The notes: generated from the sequence alone by a model not told the origin. A stretch of DNA of 8,723 bases from Octopus sinensis (GCF_006345805.1 NW_021828268.1:1-8723); one strand, 5' to 3'; shown: positions 399 through 8,643, counted from the stretch's first letter. A program made the numbers and translations.

Positions 399-419
399 TA
401 TATCAAAATACTGAACTTT
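399..419 (+). repeat. Left target-site duplication of the F1 SINE dimer
   Basis: TATATCAAAATACTGAACTTT matches 836-856 TATATCAAGATACTGAACTTT at 20/21 positions. Confidence 0.9.
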
Positions 420-421
420 AA

Positions 422-835
422 GGCGGCGAGCTGGCAGAAACGTTAGCGCGCCGGGCGAAATGCTTAGCGGTATTTCGTCTGCCGTTACGTTCTGAGTTCA
501 AATTCCGCCGAGGTCGACTTTGCCTTTCATTCTTTCGGGGTCGATAAATAAAGTACCAGTTTCGCACTAGGGTCGATGTAATCGACTTAATCCATTTGTC
601 TGTCCTTGTTTGTCCCCTCTATGTTTAGCCCCTTGTGGGTAATAAAGAAATAGTTATTTCGTCTGTCGTTACGTTCTGAGTTCAAATTCTGCCGAGGTCG
701 ACTTTACCTTTTATCCTTTCGGGGTCGATAAATTAAGTACCAGTTTCGCACTGGGGTCGATGTAATCGACTTAATCCGTTTCTCTGTCCTTGTCTGTCCC
801 CTCTATGTTTGGCCCCTTGTGGTAGTAAAGAAATA
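422..835 (+). mobile_element. tRNA-derived SINE family F1, dimeric copy (head + 2 x 184-bp units)
   Basis: A-box-like TGGCAGAAACG at 432 and B-box GAGTTCAAATTCC at 494 and again at 678. Unit period 184 (TATTTC at 471 and 655). Ends AAAGAAATA; flanked by a 21-bp TSD. The central GTCGACTTTGCCTTTCATCCTTTCGGGGTCGATAAA segment resembles, from memory, the MetaSINE-type conserved domain (needs a Dfam/Repbase/SINEBase check). Confidence 0.93.
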
Positions 836-856
836 TATATCAAGATACTGAACTTT
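836..856 (+). repeat. Right target-site duplication of the F1 SINE dimer
   Basis: Direct repeat of 399-419 with one mismatch (A407/G844), immediately after the SINE 3' end. Confidence 0.9.
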
Positions 857-1252
857 TGTCCTCAAATAAAGAAATCTTAGAGAATAAAGACCCTATAACA
901 ATAGTGAAGCTCAACTAGATTCAAAGATAAAATTCCTTATTCGCCTAACTCCATTCTATTTCCCCAACTAAAGAAAGGCACCGCTATGACATATTGTTTC
1001 TATGCCTCTTTTATATTTGACTTAAACTTTTACACATCCTTCAAACTTAATAGGTAAATACTGCCAAACAAACAATAAATAGAGAGCGCTGTTTAACAGA
1101 AATATTTTAAAATTAAACTACAGATGAAAAGAACATTGTATATACCACACAATAAAACTGAGGGGATATGATAGTACTGATATCTCGAAACGTGCATACT
1201 AAATTTTGCGGAAGCCATTATTTATAAATAGAGGTAATTTCTATAAAACCAA

Positions 1253-1290
1253 CCAATTACGTGGCACGTGAGCGATATATAGGCATGACC
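1253..1290 (+). promoter_or_regulatory. Possible cis-element cluster: CCAAT, TACGTG and CACGTG E-box cores, TATA-like
   Basis: CCAAT 1253-1257, TACGTG 1258-1263, CACGTG 1265-1270, then GATATATAGG. Motif co-occurrence only. Confidence 0.2.
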
Positions 1291-1452
1291 GAAAACTACG
1301 TTCTCTTTCAGACAATTTGATATTTGAAATCCGACGAAATTAGCTGTCTACATCTGGCAATTATCAGAAAAATCTCCTAATTACAACATCAAAAGGAAGA
1401 TTATGGAAAAATAAAAGACACGGAAGAATGGAAAAGAAAGACGTAATCTTTT

Positions 1453-1525
1453 ATGTATGTGTGTATGTGTCTTCATCTATATAGTTGTGTGTGGTGTGGT
1501 GTATGTACGTGTGTGTATGTGTGTT

Positions 1526-1558
<33 letters not shown>

Positions 1559-1620
1559 ATGCGTGTGTGTGTGTGTGTGCATGTATGTATGTATGTATGT
1601 ATGTATGTATATGCACACAC
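1453..1620. repeat. Compound (TG)n/(TA)n/(TATG)n microsatellite
   Basis: Direct reading of alternating purine-pyrimidine runs. Confidence 0.95.
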
Positions 1621-1675
1621 TCACACATGGAAGTATATAATTGATTCCATCGGAAAATTGATAGCCACTACCATT

Positions 1676-1972
1676 ATACATATATATATGGATATAGATA
1701 TATATATATATACAAACACGCATGCATATAATAGATAGATATCATATAGATATAAGACAGACAACAGACAGACAGACATACAGACAGATAAATACAGATA
1801 CATATGTATAGTTACATTTACGTACATATAGTCACACATACATACATATAATTTATATATATATTATATATTTATATATATATATAATTATATATATATA
1901 TATAGATATACCAAACATACTTTTACATATATCTATATATATTTATGCATTTGCATGTATGTATATGTATGT
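1676..1972. repeat. Compound (TA)n/(GATA)n/(GACA)n low-complexity tract
   Basis: Direct reading. Confidence 0.9.
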
Positions 1973-2502
1973 ATCCGTTATATAAGAGCAGTATTAGTTG
2001 CAGTATTCGTCGAAAAATAATATACCTTATGACCGTGCTTTATTTTACGAACACAATACATATCAGAGGTAGACGAACATCATACGAACAGTAGTAGCAA
2101 GTGTGTATGCAAGATGCGCATTTCTACATGGTTGAGCGTCGTCAGTAGAATATACTCACAGCCAAATGCAAGCTAAGATAAAATCTGTCACCACCGTTAT
2201 CGGAAAACTGTGAATGAACAGTCCACTGCGTTTTGTAAATAACCGTGCGGTTGAATAAAATTCCTGAGAGCAACCCACTGGCAGCGGCAACAGTAAATTT
2301 GTAAAGAACAGTTAAGGAAAGCACTAAAAGGAATTGGTTGAAGAATGAAAAAAACTTTTTACAAATTTTATTTAACCGTCGCGATTCGTTTCGTTACGGA
2401 CAGTGTAGAGAGCTTGCAGTAGTCGGCTGTTTTCCAGTGTTAAGAAGATAATAGTAACGAGAACGCTCGCCCACTTTTAAAGGCAATGTGTGGGTCGAAT
2501 AG

Positions 2503-3268
2503 GGTGGCGAGCTGGCAGAAACGTTAGCGCGCTGGGCGAAATGCTTAGCGTTATTTCACCTGTCGCAACGTTGTAAGTTCAAATTCCGCCGAGGTCGACT
2601 TTGCCCTTCATCCTTTCGGGGTCGATTAAATAAGTACCAGTTGCGCACAGGGGTCAATGTAATCGACTTAATCTGTTTGTCTGTCCTTGTTTGTCCCCTC
2701 TGTGTTTATCCCCTTGCGGGTAGTAAAGAAGTAGGTATTTCGTCTGCCGCTACGTTCTGAGTTCAAATTCCGCCGAGGTCGACTTTGCCCTTCATCCTTT
2801 CGGGGTCGATTAAATAAGTACCAGTTACGCACTGGAGTTGATGTAATCGACTTAATCCGTTTGTCTGTCCTTGTTTGTCCTCTCTGTATTTAGCCCCTTG
2901 CGGGTAGTAAAGAAATAGGTATTTCGTCTGCCGCTACGTTCTGAGTTCAAATTCCGCCGAGGTCGACTTTGCCCTTCATCCTTTCGGGGTCGATTAAATA
3001 AGTACCAGTTGGCACTGGGGTCGATATAATCGACTTGATCCGTTTGTTTGTCCTTGATTATCCTCTCTGTGTTTAGCCCCTTGTGGGTAGTAAAGAAATA
3101 GGTATTTTGTCTGCCGCTACGTTCTGAGTTCAAATTCCGCCGAGGTTGACTTTACCTTTCATCCTTTCGGGGCTGATAAATTAAGTACGAGATGCATACT
3201 GGGGTCAATCTAATCGGCTGGCACCCTCTCCCAAAATTTCGGGCCTTGTGCCTAATGTAGAAAAGAAT
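2503..3268 (+). mobile_element. F1 SINE tetrameric array: head + three tail-A units + one unit ending in alternative tail B
   Basis: Head GGTGGCGAGCTGGCAGAAACG at 2503. Unit starts (TATTTC/TATTTT) at 2552, 2736, 2920, 3103 (periods 184, 184, 183). The last unit leaves tail A after GGGGTCAATCTAATCGGCT and ends GGCACCCTCTCCCAAAATTTCGGGCCTTGTGCCTAATGTAGAAAAGAAT. No TSD found. Confidence 0.93.
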
Positions 3269-3477
3269 GTGGATGCCAAATGTCTGTGCTAGAAAGAGAT
3301 AGACGTACAATCGTCTAAGAGCAAAAAAATAAACAGTTCGAAGATTCTTGAGAGAGTTCCAATCTGTACATGTTTGAAAGTTGAAAGTAGGTCGGGAGGA
3401 CGAAGTAAGTGAATGGAGTTAGCTGTGTTGAGCTAAGTTTTACCTCAGATGTTGAGGAAATGGACAACACTTATTTA

Positions 3478-4195
3478 CAGTGTGATTGAAAAGTAACTCC
3501 CTATTTTCAAATACTTATAAATTATTTATTAATTGTAACTTTTGTGTTTGTTTGTCCTTAAGCGTATAGATGTAACGCTTCAAGGTTCTCACATCAGAAT
3601 AACCAGTGAATATCGAAGAATTAACACCAACAAGGAAGAAATATTATTTACATATATTATTTATTCGTTTACCCGACAGGTTGTTACAGAGACAGTAGAA
3701 AAAAGGTTGTCTGTCAGTAGAGAGGGAAAGAGTAAGGTAGTCATGGTGCTTTTTCTCTCTTACTTGTTGCAGTATTTGACTGCGGCCATGCTGGAGCACC
3801 GCCTTTAATCGAGCAACTCGACCTCGACCCCCGGGACTTATCTTGTGTAAGCCCAGTACTTATTCATCGGTCTCTTTTCCGAACCGCTAAGTACGGGGGA
3901 CATAACACACCAGCATCGGTTGTCAAAGCAATGCTAGGGGACAAACACAGACACACACATAATATATATCGTATATATACATATTACGACGGGCTTCTTT
4001 CAGTTTCCGTCTAACCAATCCACTCACAAGGCTTTGGTCGGCCGAGGCTATAGTAGAAGACACTTGCCCAAGGTGCCACGCAGTGTACACTGAACCCCGG
4101 GAACCATTGGCTGTAAACAAGCTACTTACCACACAGCGCACTCCTGCGCCTTTAATAACTTTTTTAAAATAGGGAGTTTCCTTTCAATCACCCTG
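3478..4195. mobile_element. Tc1/mariner-type MITE (non-autonomous DNA transposon) interrupted by a SINE
   Basis: Left TIR 3478-3507 CAGTGTGATTGAAAAGTAACTCCCTATTTT vs reverse complement of 4166-4195 CAGGGTGATTGAAAGGAAACTCCCTATTTT: 27/30 identical. TA on both sides (3476-3477, 4196-4197). CAG(G/T)GTG ends with a TA duplication are typical of Tc1/mariner. No transposase ORF. Confidence 0.85.
3750..4150 (-). mobile_element. tRNA-derived SINE family F2, full-length copy with internal microsatellite
   Basis: Minus strand starts GGCGCAGGAGTGCGCTGTGTGGTAAGTAGC (A-box-like), has a B-box-like GGTTCAGTG, then GGCACCTTGGGCAAGTGTCTT (CCTTGGGCAAG follows the tRNA head in CORE/V-type SINEs). Internal TA/TG tract at ~3944-3985; tail GGCGGTGCTCCAGCATGGCCGCAGTCAAA...CAAGTAAGAGAG. 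Recalled as an abundant Octopus SINE. Confidence 0.88.
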
Positions 4196-4685
4196 TATCT
4201 TGAACACAGTATGATAGTTGACTTTTGTAAATTTCTGAGCACAAATGCCGAGAACAAAGGAGAGAAGCTTGCAGAAACATTTAGTATGCGGTTTCAATTC
4301 CTGGATGAAAATCCAGGAACTAACCATCTAAGGTTCAAAACCTTATATATCTATTAGATACGATTTCGATTCCCAGTTGATTCAACATCCTTTTACTTAC
4401 TCCGTCACCATAGAAAGAGGAAGCCGCCATCACTTTGTTCGAACATAGAGTAATGTAATACGGGGGAAAACATTAAAAAAAAACATAGATAAAGTGAAAC
4501 TAGGGAAAACACTGGACAGTCACGGTTGGCATGGCATTTGATCATAGGTCTGTTCAATCAAAGCTGTCGCTAAATACTTTCTTTCTAAATGTTCCTCAGA
4601 GAAATTTCTGGAGACTCTTCTATTATATTTTCATTTTTTCTTTATAATTACATGATCTAGCTGCTGAGTCAGTTAGCTGATATTT

Positions 4686-5082
4686 GAGAGAGAGAGAGAG
4701 AAAGAGAGAGAAAGAGTGAGACAGAGGGAGACAGTGAGAGAGAGAGACAGAGGAAGACAGTGAGAGAGAGAGACAGAGGGAGACAGCGAGAGAGAGAGAC
4801 AGAGAGAGACAGAGGGAGACAATGAGAGAGAGACAGACAGAGGGAGACAGAGAGAGAGAGAGACAGAGGGAGACAGAGAGAGAGAGACAGAAGGAGACAG
4901 TGAGAGAGAGACAGACAGAGAGAGACAGTGAGAGAGACAGACAGAGAGAGACAGAGAGAGAGAGAGAGAGGGAGACAATGAGAGAGACATACAGACAGAC
5001 AGAGGGAAACAGAGAGAGAGAGAGGGAGACAGTGAGAGAGAGAGAGACAGAGGAAGACAGTGAGAGAGAAAGAAAGAGAAAG
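4686..5082. repeat. GA-derived degenerate minisatellite, ~24-bp unit AGACAGT(GA)nCAGAGGG
   Basis: AGACAG(T/C/A) and CAGAGG(G/A) recur around variable (GA)n spacers; almost entirely purine on the + strand. Confidence 0.9.
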
Positions 5083-5149
5083 AGTGTGTGTGTCGAGTAC
5101 ATAATTTTCGGCTCAAATTGGACATCGACGTTCCAGCGTGTGTGTTTGC

Positions 5150-5170
5150 TTGTTAGCGCGCCATCTTAGA
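5150..5170 (-). promoter_or_regulatory. YY1-like motif (AAGATGGCGCGC) in a CpG-containing unique island
   Basis: The plus strand GCGCGCCATCTT matches the YY1 consensus (CGCCATNTT) and lies next to a GA tract. Motif match only. Confidence 0.25.
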
Positions 5171-5259
5171 ATGTATGTTTCTGTTCACGTTCTCAGATGT
5201 GTATACGTATGTACAGGTATAAGTGTGCTTATATCTAGGTCAGTATATAAGCTTATATG

Positions 5260-5502
5260 TATATATGTGTTTATGTGTGTGTGTGTGGATGTGTGAGTGT
5301 GTATATGTGTGCGTTCAACTGATTCGATTGTAATTATAAGAACATTGCATTAATGGAAATATTATGTATATGTATGTGTATGTATATCTGTATGTGTGCG
5401 CGTGTGTGCGCGTGTAAGAGTGCATATGAATGTGTGTCAGCGTATGTGAGTGTGTGTGTGTGTGTGTATGTGTGTGTGTGTGTCTGTGTGTGTGTTTGTG
5501 TG
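5260..5502. repeat. Compound (TG)n/(TATG)n microsatellite
   Basis: Direct reading; interrupted by short unique pieces. Confidence 0.9.
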
Positions 5503-5607
5503 TCGTTAAGAGAACGTTTAGCTAGAATATAGAACTAAAGTCAGTGTTTATTGACCTCAGTGTGAACAATTAAGGGAGAGAAAAAGAAAGAGTTACACAT
5601 ATAAATA

Positions 5608-5695
5608 GAGAGAGACAGAGAGAGAGAGAGAGAGAGGAAAAGATGAAGAGAGGAGAGAAAGAGGGAGAGACAGGAGAGACAGGGAGAGGAGGGGA
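5608..5695. repeat. (GA)n/polypurine tract
   Basis: Direct reading. Confidence 0.9.
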
Positions 5696-5744
5696 ACCAC
5701 TAAATCAATATGTTACTCATCAATGGTGAACAAGGTAAGCAATT

Positions 5745-5769
5745 TATGTGTGTATGTACGAATATTATT

Positions 5770-5800
<31 letters not shown>

Positions 5801-6115
5801 GTGTGGTGTGTGTATATATTATATATTCATATATACATATAATATATATATATATATATGTATATACATAATATATATACATATATATATACATATATAT
5901 ACATATATATATATATATACTATATACAATGGCATATATAAGATTATAATATATACATATATATATATACATATACATATATATATACTTATATATGTGT
6001 GTGTGTCTACGTGAATACATACACACTCACAAATATATATATATATATAACATACAACCTACATACATCCATACATACATATATACTTATACACACACAC
6101 ACACACAAGCGTGTG
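5745..6115. repeat. Compound (TA)n/(TACA)n/(CA)n microsatellite
   Basis: Direct reading. Confidence 0.95.
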
Positions 6116-6204
6116 TGTCTGTCTCAATGACTGTATGTGTTTGTATGTGTGCGTTTCTTGGTTCTAGCAGCTTCGTGTATTTCCCACTTCTGCGCTGTAT
6201 TATC

Positions 6205-6435
6205 TAGCTATACATGTATATGTGTGTATGTGTACCCACACGAACGTACGTTCACACATATATACATATATGCCTATACACACTCATACACACATATGTG
6301 TTTCAATATCTATCCAAATGTATACATTTATGGATATGCATGTATGTGTGTATATATATATGTGTGTGTGTGTGTGTATCTATCCATCTATCAATCTATT
6401 TATTTATACACACACAGACACACACACATTTATAC

Positions 6436-6467
<32 letters not shown>

Positions 6468-6495
6468 ATATATAATATACTCACCACACATACAC
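6205..6495. repeat. Compound (TA)/(CA)/(TG)/(TCTA) low-complexity tract
   Basis: Direct reading. Confidence 0.9.
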
Positions 6496-6624
6496 AAGAA
6501 AATGCATGTGCAATGTAGACTTACAACTGTTTTGAGATGCATTTTGTGTGCATTCATCTTTCAGTTTACTCAATCGATCGACAGATCGATTGAAAATAGT
6601 CGACGACCGTTACAGCCTGCTACA

Positions 6625-6743
6625 AATATATAATACAATTTTATATATATTATATGTACATATATATACGCATGTATATATATATATGTACATGTATATG
6701 CTTGTATATATATATATATATTATGTATATATACACATGTATG

Positions 6744-6775
<32 letters not shown>

Positions 6776-6789
6776 CATATTATATATAT

Positions 6790-6839
<50 letters not shown>

Positions 6840-6900
6840 TATATTATATATTTATACTCACACACAACACACTCACACACACGCACATATATATATATAT
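6625..6900. repeat. Long interrupted (TA)n microsatellite with (CA)n
   Basis: Direct reading. Confidence 0.95.
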
Positions 6901-6986
6901 ACGATAAATGTAAACAAGCCAGTGTTTGCCTTAGAAGCTCTGAAATGTGTATTGTTAGATACAAATAAGATAATCATAAACTTTCA

Positions 6987-7011
6987 AACGCTGACCGAAC
7001 GCTGACCGAAC
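6987..7011 (+). repeat. 11-bp tandem duplication (AACGCTGACCG x2 + AAC)
   Basis: Perfect direct repeat at 6987-6997 and 6998-7008. Confidence 0.9.
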
Positions 7012-7066
7012 AGCAGAGAAAGGACAAAATATCCATACAAACCAGAAAAACCGCCCATTGACAGTG

Positions 7067-7137
7067 GACGGTTTAGCTTAACTGATAAATCAATTGACCG
7101 GTAATCAAAGAGATACGATTTCGAGTCCCCGCCTTTT
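7067..7137 (+). pseudogene. Degenerate tRNA-like sequence (tRNA-Thr-like pseudogene or SINE head)
   Basis: TAGCTTAACTGATAAA sits at tRNA positions 8 onward (A-box-like). Anticodon arm ATTGA-CCGGTAA-TCAAA pairs 4/5 with a 7-nt loop (xGT anticodon), followed by a TTCGAGTCCC T-loop and TTTT. T and acceptor stems do not pair, so it is not a functional tRNA. Confidence 0.4.
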
Positions 7138-7240
7138 ATGGATATTTTATCCTGTCTCAGCTGTTCTATCAGCGTTAGTGTATTTGAAAATATATTATTA
7201 TCTTATTTGTATTTCACATAAATATATAGATATATAGATA

Positions 7241-7578
7241 CATGGTGGCTGCCCCCTCGTTATCGAGTATGGCCATTGCACGAAGCTTAATCAATGTTGT
7301 TATCGTTCAATGCCTGTGCAAGAAGATATTTTTTTAAGTGAGGAAAGGCTGTGCACTGAGTCAATCCCACTCACTAAGCAACAGCAGCCATGATCCGAAA
7401 AGAAGAACAAGTCAACATCATCGGTAACCACTGAGCCGCAGGTTTTATGTCGGAGTTATCCCAGTTACCTGAGTTACCTTCTCCTAGAAGGATGCCCTAA
7501 CAAAAGCTAGGAGTCCTTCATTTCCAATTGTTTAACTGCGCGATCGGGTATTCAGTCCGATTATTTCTATGTCCCCGC
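7241..7578 (-). mobile_element. Probable non-autonomous RTE-derived (bipartite) retroelement
   Basis: Minus strand CTAGCTTTTGTTAGGGCATCCTTCTAGGAGAAGGTAACTC (7510-7471) resembles the recalled RTE 5'UTR motif (...GGCAACCAGTCTAGGAGAAGGAAAACTC). The 3' end CAATGGCCATACTCG-ATAA-CGAGGGGGCAGCC has an RTE-like terminal hairpin followed by a TATC/TA repeat tail. No ORF, no TSD; boundaries approximate. Confidence 0.55.
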
Positions 7579-7969
7579 GCATGATACATCCTTCAGAATA
7601 TGGAGAAAGTCAGGAAGTATGAGATGAATATATTTATTCATAGAATATCAATTGGTGAAATAAATGTATTCGTCTCACACCTTAATTTCTTCATATTCTA
7701 CAAACTCCTGCTGAAATAATCTTCGCGGATTGCGTTTATGAGATTTCAACTGCATAGGACCCTGCGTTACACTCTTACATATTGGCTTATTATGTGGTAT
7801 ATAGCCAGGTCCACTAAACGAGCTTCATTCTTTTATTTTGTGATTACCACTGGACTATATAAATCTATATAATCTCTGTCTGCCAGTCTCTTTCTCTCAA
7901 CCTTCCGCCTTTGCTCTCTCGTTGATCACACGTGACCATCGGCCATCTTTCTTTTCCTAACTTGAATTT

Positions 7970-8451
7970 CAAACAAGGACAGACAAAGGGATTAAGTCAA
8001 TTACATCGACCCCAGTGCGTAACTGCTAAGCATTTCGTCCGGCATGCTAACGTTTCTTATTTCTTTACTGCCCACAAGGGGTTACACACAGAGGGTACAA
8101 ACAAGGACAGACAAACGGATTAAGTCGATTATATCGACCCCAGTGCGTAACTGGTACTTAATTTATCGACCCCGAAAGGATGAAAGGCAAAGTCGACCTC
8201 GGCGGAATTTAAACTCAGAACGTAGCGGCAGACGAAATACCTATTTCTTTATTACCCACAAGGGGCTAAACACAGAGGGGACAAACAAGGACAGACAGAC
8301 ATAGGTATTAAGTCGATTACATCGACCCCAGTGCGTAACTGGTACTTATTTATCGACCCCGAAAGGATGATGAAGGCAAAGTCGACCTCGGCGGAATTCG
8401 AACTCACAACGTAACGCAGACGAAATACCGCTATGCATTCTGCTCGCCGCC
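7970..8451 (-). mobile_element. F1 SINE array, rearranged: deleted head + 2 units + re-entry into head + truncated third unit
   Basis: Minus strand starts GGCGGCGAGCAGAATGC (A-box largely deleted). Unit 1 is followed by the standard GAAATAG|GTATTTC junction (8234-8247) and unit 2 (8058-8241). Then AGAAACGTTAGC...ATGCTTAGC (8025-8057) is fused to AGTTACGCACTGG, and the copy is truncated at 7970. Confidence 0.92.
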
Positions 8452-8571
8452 TTTGAGTAATGATATAATGTCTAAGTTATGTTTGTACTTGTGTTGTTAT
8501 CAATCAAATAAAATTTCCGTAAGAAGAGTCGATGTGAAAACAAATTGATAGAATTTCATTTTTTCGGCTTT

Positions 8572-8643
8572 GCAGAATTTGAACTCAGAACCTAGACATA
8601 CGGAACAAATACTGCAAACATTTCTTCTGACGCCTAAACGTTT
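8572..8643 (-). mobile_element. Old degenerate F1-related SINE head fragment
   Basis: Minus strand AAACGTTTAGGCGTCAGAAGAAATGTTTGCAGTATTTG...GTTCTGAGTTCAAATTCTGC aligns with the F1 head through the B-box. Confidence 0.7.

Follow-up and report, generated by a model that had tools for sequence, protein, structure and literature searches.

The window analyzed here is the whole of an 8,723-nucleotide stretch of Octopus sinensis DNA (GCF_006345805.1 NW_021828268.1:1-8723), AT-rich animal DNA laden with microsatellites. It contains three short tandem arrays of one short interspersed element (SINE), located at 420-835 and 2501-3268 on the plus strand (arrays 1 and 2) and at 8058-8437 on the minus strand (array 3). 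All arrays open with SINE head sequence and close at a SINE tail, and the units inside them are joined at one and the same point. These arrays most likely represent a SINE lineage that is multimeric and propagates in that form, which is a known kind of repeat, and not a new joining mechanism.

The 14-mer spanning the unit junction, GAAATAGGTATTTC, was searched for with up to two mismatches and occurs at five sites in the whole window: 647-660, 2728-2741 and 3095-3108 (one mismatch each) and 2912-2925 (no mismatch) on the plus strand, and 8234-8247 (no mismatch) on the minus strand. The chance expectation from dinucleotide shuffles is a mean of 0.14 matches, and the observed count was reached in 0 of 200 shuffles. 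Tandem Repeats Finder reported three arrays, of which those at 471-835 and 2552-3216 have a 184-nt period (2.0 and 3.6 copies, respectively) and that at 8058-8429 has a 188-nt period (2.0 copies). A preliminary description of this DNA had pointed to one precise junction recurring at three loci and forming an inverted repeat, and both points are borne out, GAAATA being the reverse complement of TATTTC. The flanks of the three arrays, compared with the arrays masked, are mutually dissimilar, and the three loci are independent. The five junctions do not amount to five events, however, as three of the five lie in one array. The 14-mer was not found in 39 kb of Octopus bimaculoides DNA (locus L001, see below).

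The position of the join can be fixed to the base. The terminal units of array 1 (ending at 835, directly before its target site duplication, TSD) and array 3 (ending at 8058), as well as a monomer of the same type in L001, end in ...AAAGAAATA without a G, and the next unit in an array begins with GGTATTTCG; the breakpoint therefore falls between the tail end and the G at position 48 of the head (G48). In other words, the last base of a complete SINE is followed by G48, where the native head reads GCTTAGC/GGTATTTCG. The preliminary description was correct in proposing a single shared join, which it wrote as GAAATAG/GTATTTC, but the true break is one base further to the left. Across the join the 20-mer is AAAGAAATAGGTATTTCGTC, and its counterpart in the native head is GCTTAGCGGTATTTCGTC. 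Two other causes were rejected. An assembly artefact does not account for units that differ from each other by 5-13%, and microhomology between the GAAAT of the tail and that of the head predicts the junction GAAAT/GCTTAGCGG, while a different one was observed.

Array 1 is a complete dimer within a single 21-bp TSD. The left duplication (TATATCAAAATACTGAACTTT, 399-419, plus strand) adjoins the SINE start and is identical at 20 of 21 positions to the right one (TATATCAAGATACTGAACTTT, 836-856, plus strand); the shared form is TATATCAA(A/G)ATACTGAACTTT, and its alignment score was reached in 0 of 2000 shuffles. The full SINE head at 420-468 (AAGGCGGCGAGC...GCTTAGC) includes an A-box-like motif and the 5' arm of a head hairpin. 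It is followed by a first unit of 184 nt at 469-652, running from GGTATTTCG... to ...AAAGAAATA, and by a second unit without head at 653-835, whose ...AAAGAAATA end abuts the right TSD. Positions 422-653 are 96.6% identical to the monomer consensus by BLAST.

Array 2, also on the plus strand, begins with a full SINE head (2501-2549, BLAST to the consensus), and alignment of the units places unit 1 at 2550-2733, unit 2 at 2734-2917, unit 3 (183 nt) at 2918-3100 and unit 4 at 3101-3268. The last unit is a hybrid of the two SINE types described below. Its first ~17-50 nt are type A and carry the array's own variant GCCGCTACG, and the remainder is type-B core and tail (...GGGCCTTGTGCCTAATGTAGAAAAGAAT) when aligned with the type-B monomers of L001. 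The switch from A to B thus occurs inside a unit, in a homologous region and not at a junction. The 184-nt junctions of this array had been recognized previously, whereas the hybrid last unit had been missed. The head and the first ~27 nt that follow it (2501-2580) are ~16% diverged from the consensus, compared with ~6% in the rest of unit 1; this may reflect CpG decay in a CpG-rich head or a separate history of the 5' end of array 2.

Array 3 is a dimer of 380 nt on the minus strand (8058-8437), 5'-truncated at about head position 40, with unit 1 running from 8429 to 8242, unit 2 from 8241 to 8058 and the junction from 8247 to 8234. The tail of its second unit is followed by a different join, GAAATA/AGAAACGTTAGC. 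On one side of the dimer, at 8438-8453 (minus strand), lies the 5' piece of an older type-A copy, AAGGCGGCGAGCAGAA, in which AGAA is a putative 4-bp TSD. On the other side, at 7970-8057 (minus strand), lies the 3' piece of that copy, AGAAACGTTAGCATGCC...CCTTGTTTG, with an internal deletion and a 3' truncation. When the flanks of 8437-8058 are joined, a continuous type-A head is restored (44 of 48 head positions). With one head restored in this way, the 380-nt dimer would have gone in as a single piece, 5'-truncated in the typical manner. Read most simply, array 3 is thus a dimer with a truncated 5' end that landed within the head of an older copy; a 24-nt head deletion beside an adjacent truncated copy is a possible alternative, which needs more events. 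For the same reason GAAATA/AGAAACGTTAGC was rejected as an alternative unit junction. The preliminary description had correctly placed a junction at 8234-8247 on the minus strand, and it had overlooked this second join and the nested insertion. Just beyond array 3, at 8572-8643 (minus strand), there is a more distant SINE head fragment, ...GAAATGTTTGCAGTATTTGTTCC...GGTTCTGAGTTCAAATTCTGC, with 73% identity to head positions 17-87.

The repeat unit of these arrays is an abundant octopus SINE which occurs both as monomers and as multimers. It is short, dispersed and multi-copy, with three arrays and additional fragments in the window. A six-frame translated query matched four Octopus bimaculoides proteins containing exonized pieces of the element (83-88% identity), which identifies it as an octopus SINE; one of these proteins is a KLHL10 isoform, and its locus in the O. 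bimaculoides chromosome assembly is the 39-kb L001. By BLAST and alignment, the head and core of the element recur in L001 in ~14 dispersed copies. Most of them are type-B monomers with the tail ...GGGCCTTGTGCCTAGAGTAGAAAAGAAT, and one, at L001:4611-4839 (minus strand), is a type-A monomer with the tail ...CCCCTTGTGG..AATAAAGAAATA. Some of the type-B copies have TSDs of their own, 10-14 bp long as judged by eye, so that TSD length is variable for this element (21 bp with 20/21 identity at array 1 and 4 bp at array 3). The existence of both an A and a B tail for the same head and core suggests two partner long interspersed elements (LINEs).

In the type-A SINE, a head of 48 nt is followed by a conserved core and by a tail that ends in ...AAAGAAATA. 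An A-box-like motif, TGGCAGAAACG, is found within the first 48 nt and a B-box-like motif, GAGTTCAAATTCC, downstream of them. Downstream units of the arrays lack these 48 nt and retain GAGTTCAAATTCC, which agrees with an earlier remark that they are devoid of an A-box but keep a B-box. On these features the element would be classed as a tRNA-like SINE. The motifs are present, yet no tRNA was detected by ARAGORN, no Rfam match falls in any array in a scan of the whole window, and a scan of array 2 with lax filters returned no family at E <= 10, tRNA model included; the box-like motifs are compatible with a tRNA-derived head. A TTTT run is the usual stop signal of RNA polymerase III. The consensus contains no run of at least four T, and the only two TTTT in the arrays are both single-copy C-to-T changes. 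None of the ~20 SINE copies examined begins on its own at G48.

The central domain of the element has a counterpart elsewhere. Monomer positions 87-138 (...GGTCGACTCAGCCTTTCCTCCTTCCGAGGTCGATAAAATGAGTACCAG...) are 85% identical over 52 nt to L008:15723-15774 of an unrelated assembly (ENA assembly ERZ25878469), where the matching segment lies in a tRNA-SINE-like element. This similarity would fit a deeply conserved SINE core domain. The domain may be 'Deu', the central domain of the DeuSINE superfamily. In a repeat annotation of O. vulgaris, most of the recently active SINEs are unclassified, and the others include a few tRNA-Deu families and a single tRNA-CORE family. Exact-pattern scans for the SINE core gave no match in metagenome, viral and prokaryote genome contigs, and a protein search with a 43-amino-acid antisense SINE reading frame gave no match. 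A search with a retrotransposon reading frame from L001 led to no further octopus locus, and the octopus SINE itself was not found in the Logan and ENA loci that it yielded (L002-L008). The core motif and the SINE sequence strings also had no match in the text of the searchable literature.

Two further observations concern the SINE copies of O. bimaculoides. At L001:11561-11656 (plus strand), within a type-B copy at L001:11537-11703 (minus strand), an antisense SINE stretch is exonized in the RefSeq kelch-like protein 10 isoform X1 (peptide ...RNWYLIYRPRKDERQSGPRWNLNSEHKDRRNT...); SINE-derived stretches are also found in three more UniProt proteins of this species, an aminopeptidase-like, an MFS and a PLAT-domain protein. 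These stretches may be annotation artefacts or real exonization. At L001:7474-8021 and L001:18782-19170, different SINE families follow one another head-to-tail, only a few bases from the tail or tail microsatellite of the neighbor, and each has its own full head. Insertions in succession beside a SINE tail already in place thus give octopus another, separate way of forming tandem-like SINE clusters.

The join at G48 invites a comparison with RNA structure. The head sequence CGAAATGC-TTAGCG-GTATTTCG is indeed found at 456-477, where a native hairpin had been noted. RNA folding predicts one long imperfect hairpin, and no cloverleaf, for nucleotides 1-88 of the SINE; its top (451-482) comprises 13 bp at -16.0 kcal/mol (z = -4.0). 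G48 is the first base of the predicted descending strand, directly after the 3' edge of the apical loop. The stem that could form across the unit junction is predicted to have 4-5 A/U base pairs at -1.4 to -4.0 kcal/mol, with z between -1.0 and +0.3 relative to shuffled sequence. According to this modeling the junction hairpin would be no more stable than shuffled sequence and thermodynamically not meaningful. The proposal that the junction rebuilds the native hairpin thus stands only in a weak sense, that of a palindromic stem of 4-5 bp with z about 0 against 13 bp and -16.0 kcal/mol in the native head.

The seven type-A units differ pairwise at 10-24 of ~184 positions. Private variants are shared within arrays: T96 occurs in both units of array 1, C56 and T80/A83 occur in units 1-3 of array 2, and T154 is common to units 2 and 3 of array 2 only. 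Such sharing is the expected product of in-register expansion or homogenization. The sole position-specific site is column 180, where unit 1 of array 1, unit 1 of array 3 and the L001 type-A monomer carry A and the remaining units carry G.

We consider it probable, although well short of certain, that the arrays go back to multimeric source copies, were retrotransposed in multimeric form, and then changed in unit number by in-register unequal exchange. Insertion as multimers is indicated because one TSD surrounds the array 1 dimer and because array 3 is a nested, 5'-truncated dimer. The polarity of the arrays, each opening with head sequence and closing at a tail, is also in favor of this reading. 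A junction carried within a retrotransposing multimer is inherited, and separate loci therefore need no recurrent breakpoint. Type-B monomers in L001 share the head hairpin, yet none of them has the junction, which makes the junction a property of one lineage and not of head structure; their distribution fits a single origin in the type-A lineage. Finally, with no TTTT in the consensus, a polymerase III transcript could pass through several units. The preliminary description had argued that reuse of one breakpoint at separate loci requires a recurrent mechanism guided by structure. This argument is not supported, since inheritance of the junction, as indicated by the dimer in one TSD and the nested dimer, together with in-register exchange would suffice. 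Of the three mechanisms that it offered, namely reverse transcriptase jumping at the hairpin, a 184-nt circle, and read-through from a tandem master locus, the last fits best.

From these observations we infer a single origin of the junction, transcription of multimers, and the following order of events. In one type-A lineage, a complete copy would have been joined by its last base to a second copy beginning at G48, probably once and plausibly through an end-to-end template jump of a LINE reverse transcriptase. With A-box-like and B-box-like motifs in its first unit and no TTTT, the resulting multimer could be transcribed by read-through of several units and retrotransposed as a multimer. Its insertion would place one junction at unrelated loci, each within its own TSD. 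Unit number may then change, whether in source copies or in arrays already inserted, through in-register unequal exchange or slippage, and either process would reproduce the junction exactly and make the units of an array alike. The foreign tail of array 2 may derive from homology-driven template switching or recombination with a type-B SINE.

Several findings weigh against this explanation. The TSD of array 3, AGAA, has only 4 bp, and it is the rebuilt head, not this duplication, that argues for nesting. For array 2, neither an unconstrained nor an end-anchored test gave a significant TSD (p about 0.13-0.29), and the array, at 768 nt, is long for a polymerase III transcript. The position-specific differences expected of a stable dimeric master are nearly absent, and array 2 departs from the pattern at column 180. 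The neighbor-joining tree of the units is near star-like and groups them by locus at 46-56% bootstrap, never by position. Clustering by locus is therefore present but weak, while the clustering by position that the preliminary description would have taken as evidence against its proposal is absent; without clustering by position, a single ancient dimer without homogenization is not the answer. Such a tree is compatible both with descent from a multimeric source followed by homogenization and with repeated copying of one RNA. The palindromic junction at the hairpin apex is a hint of guidance by sequence or structure, for the first join at any rate, since a stem of at least 6 bp across the join is obtained from only 7 of 215 possible monomer start points (3%) and in 1.3% of random genomic joins. 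The sample is also small, with no more than four type-A loci in the 48 kb of octopus sequence examined, and the window had been selected for its unusual appearance.

An alternative that we regard as unlikely is that multimers are made anew at each retrotransposition, with reverse transcriptase copying an RNA whose 5' end is at G48 and then jumping end-to-end to the ...GAAAUA 3' end of the same type-A RNA or of another. The RNA could for example be cut in the apical loop, the jumps might repeat until a last round reaches the 5' end of a full-length RNA, and weak GAAAUA/UAUUUC pairing might tether the acceptor. Such copying would account for a unit whose start coincides with the 3' edge of the apical loop in a stable hairpin, for an upstream unit complete to its last base, for a palindromic junction that is otherwise a coincidence of 1-3%, for unit numbers that differ among arrays, and for the sharing of private variants within an array, which repeated copying of a single RNA would produce. 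Complementarity to TATTTC is confined to the type-A tail, and this would also explain why the type-B copies in L001 are monomers. However, products starting at G48 should outnumber jumps, and 0 of ~20 SINE copies start there on their own. The predicted tail-to-arm pairing (-1.4 to -4.0 kcal/mol, z about 0) would be outcompeted in a full-length RNA by the native hairpin of -16 kcal/mol, the end of the nascent cDNA, as read from the sequence, has no complementarity to the 3' end of the acceptor, and the A-to-B switch of array 2 lies inside a unit instead of at a junction. Both the RNA species and the jump frequency that this requires are without supporting evidence. A more specific version appears more doubtful still: type-A RNA would multimerize anew through a cut at G48 in the hairpin apex, with the GAAAUA 3' end of that or a sister RNA, a mimic of the 5' arm now lost, held at UAUUUC, followed either by a reverse transcriptase jump on what amounts to a pseudo-circular 'rolling' template or by joining of the tRNA-ligase type. 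If true, re-joining guided by the apex would be a dedicated path from SINE to tandem repeat and a direct route from retrotransposon to satellite.

Multimers could also have arisen in the DNA, from a monomer inserted first at each locus and duplicated in tandem there, independently, by unequal exchange, slippage, or breakage and rejoining at the hairpin apex, as has been proposed for the origin of SINE-derived satellites. This would agree with the weak clustering of units by locus, a TSD around the whole array is likewise expected, and unequal homologous recombination is the explanation offered for SINE arrays of squamates and bivalves. We nevertheless consider it very unlikely. The first duplication requires a non-homologous join of the tail end to G48, the differing flanks leave no shared microhomology, the sole direct repeat (the GAAAT of tail and head) would yield the junction already rejected above, and the same base pair would have to be hit three times independently. 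Most improbable of all is a 184-nt circular RNA or DNA, retrozyme-like or tRNA-intron-like, copied by rolling circle into multimers before integration. In its favor, the period is exactly one unit long, the two ends of a unit show complementarity over 6 nt, and the break lies in the loop of a tRNA-like head; processing of tRNA halves or introns likewise cuts in a tRNA loop. Yet no Rfam family (hammerhead, twister, HDV, tRNA or other) was found in array 2 by the lax scan given above, no match from the whole-window scan falls in an array, and the hammerhead core CUGANGA is absent from both strands of all three arrays, as had been noted from the outset. The arrays open with a 48-nt head that is missing from a 184-nt circle and end exactly at the tail, whereas rolling-circle products should have arbitrary phases, and array 1 has an ordinary LINE-type TSD. 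The idea of a retrozyme or 184-nt circle does not survive these findings.

Retrotransposition of ready-made multimers has counterparts among known repeats. In Alu, in the dimers and trimers of colugo CYN and in jerboa Dip/B1, a fixed junction is inherited via a multimer that is transcribed and retrotransposed, giving a single TSD. The octopus arrays resemble these in that the whole multimer occurs at independent loci with unrelated flanks (array 1 in a TSD, array 3 nested) and one fixed junction. They differ in that Alu-like multimers are usually built of complete modules derived from small RNAs, whereas downstream octopus units are without the A-box half of the head. Clear diagnostic differences separate left and right modules in Alu-like multimers; in octopus, position-specific differences are near absent and unit number is not fixed. 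The tandem repeats of metazoan retrozymes and hammerhead ribozymes are likewise short (~170-400 nt) tandem units dispersed in invertebrate genomes, a likeness that invites the idea of a circular RNA, but the octopus arrays have no hammerhead ribozyme and do have SINE head-tail polarity and a TSD.

In the blood clam Scapharca broughtonii, arrays of the form TSD1-(SINE)n-TSD1 begin with a complete head, share one head truncation inside and end with a complete tail (Mob DNA 2024; PMC11481361). Like the octopus arrays, they are formed by mollusc tRNA-derived SINEs with a conserved central domain, have the same kind of head-truncated inner units and lie as a whole in one TSD; unlike in octopus, where the upstream unit is complete to the last base and there are 2-4 units, upstream units in the clam are truncated at the 3' tail, and the clam arrays studied have 4-15 units (PMC11481361). 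No mechanism was established for the clam arrays, and unequal recombination between TSDs is cited in the discussion of that work as a possible route (PMC11481361). A satellite derived from Nin-SINE is known from a limpet (PMC11121367).

SINE-derived satellites (sSat) of squamates are present with the same unit at up to thousands of loci in snakes (Vassetzky et al., Mob DNA 2023; PMC10702118), and multimers of whole SINEs (jerboa Dip/B1) as well as the amplification of SINEs in dimeric form (Alu) are mentioned in the same paper. As in octopus, sSat repeat a defined part of a SINE in tandem, their terminal units reach the SINE terminus, their unit boundaries recur, and they are homogeneous within and between loci (PMC10702118). 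There are three differences (PMC10702118). sSat have at least four middle monomers, a working threshold of the authors, and up to about 1000, and the octopus arrays with 2, 2 and 3.6-4 units miss this threshold. The sSat units are mostly internal SINE fragments, while the octopus unit consists of the rest of the head, the body and a complete tail. Finally, sSat prefer subtelomeres, and TSDs and retrotransposition of arrays are unaddressed there. The octopus case stands apart from both clam and squamate arrays by its complete upstream unit, its breakpoint at the hairpin apex, its 2-4 units, and two loci with direct evidence of multimer insertion. We found no description of the same arrangement in cephalopods in the searchable literature, which does not cover repeat databases.

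SINEs account for 4-12% of octopus genomes, where they have been linked to genome reshuffling. Multi-unit copies in ordinary TSDs would show that retrotransposition can spread a short tandem array as such. Spread of this kind would tie interspersed repeats in one concrete way to the seeds of satellite DNA, a question left open for squamate sSat and bivalve arrays. The value of the present arrays is mainly descriptive, as a test case for the published chromosome-level octopus genomes, and would become mechanistic only if the apex breakpoint and the palindromic junction prove recurrent.

The remainder of the window contains other repeats. Microsatellite density is very high at 1454-1910, 4686-5084, 5256-5503, 5769-6086 and 6431-6856, including (TA)n, (TG)n and (GAGA)n as well as a GA-rich array of ~400 bp with a 26-nt period. 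Rfam microRNA matches (mir-297, mir-466, mir-3149 and others) lie in TG/TA microsatellites, far below gathering scores, and were rejected as artefacts. Terminal inverted repeats of 46 bp at 3476-3521 and 4152-4197 (85% identical, TACAGTGTGATTGAAAAGTAACTCCCTATTTT...) enclose an element of ~720 bp that looks like a non-autonomous DNA transposon similar to miniature inverted-repeat transposable elements, and its interior at ~3770-4140 looks like another repeat. An 88-bp inverted repeat at 6953-7040 and 7134-7218 (80% identical) forms a foldback element of ~265 bp. Its center, GATACGATTTCGAGTCCCCGCC, resembles GATACGATTTCGATTCCCAG at ~4350-4375, and the element may belong to another small repeat family.

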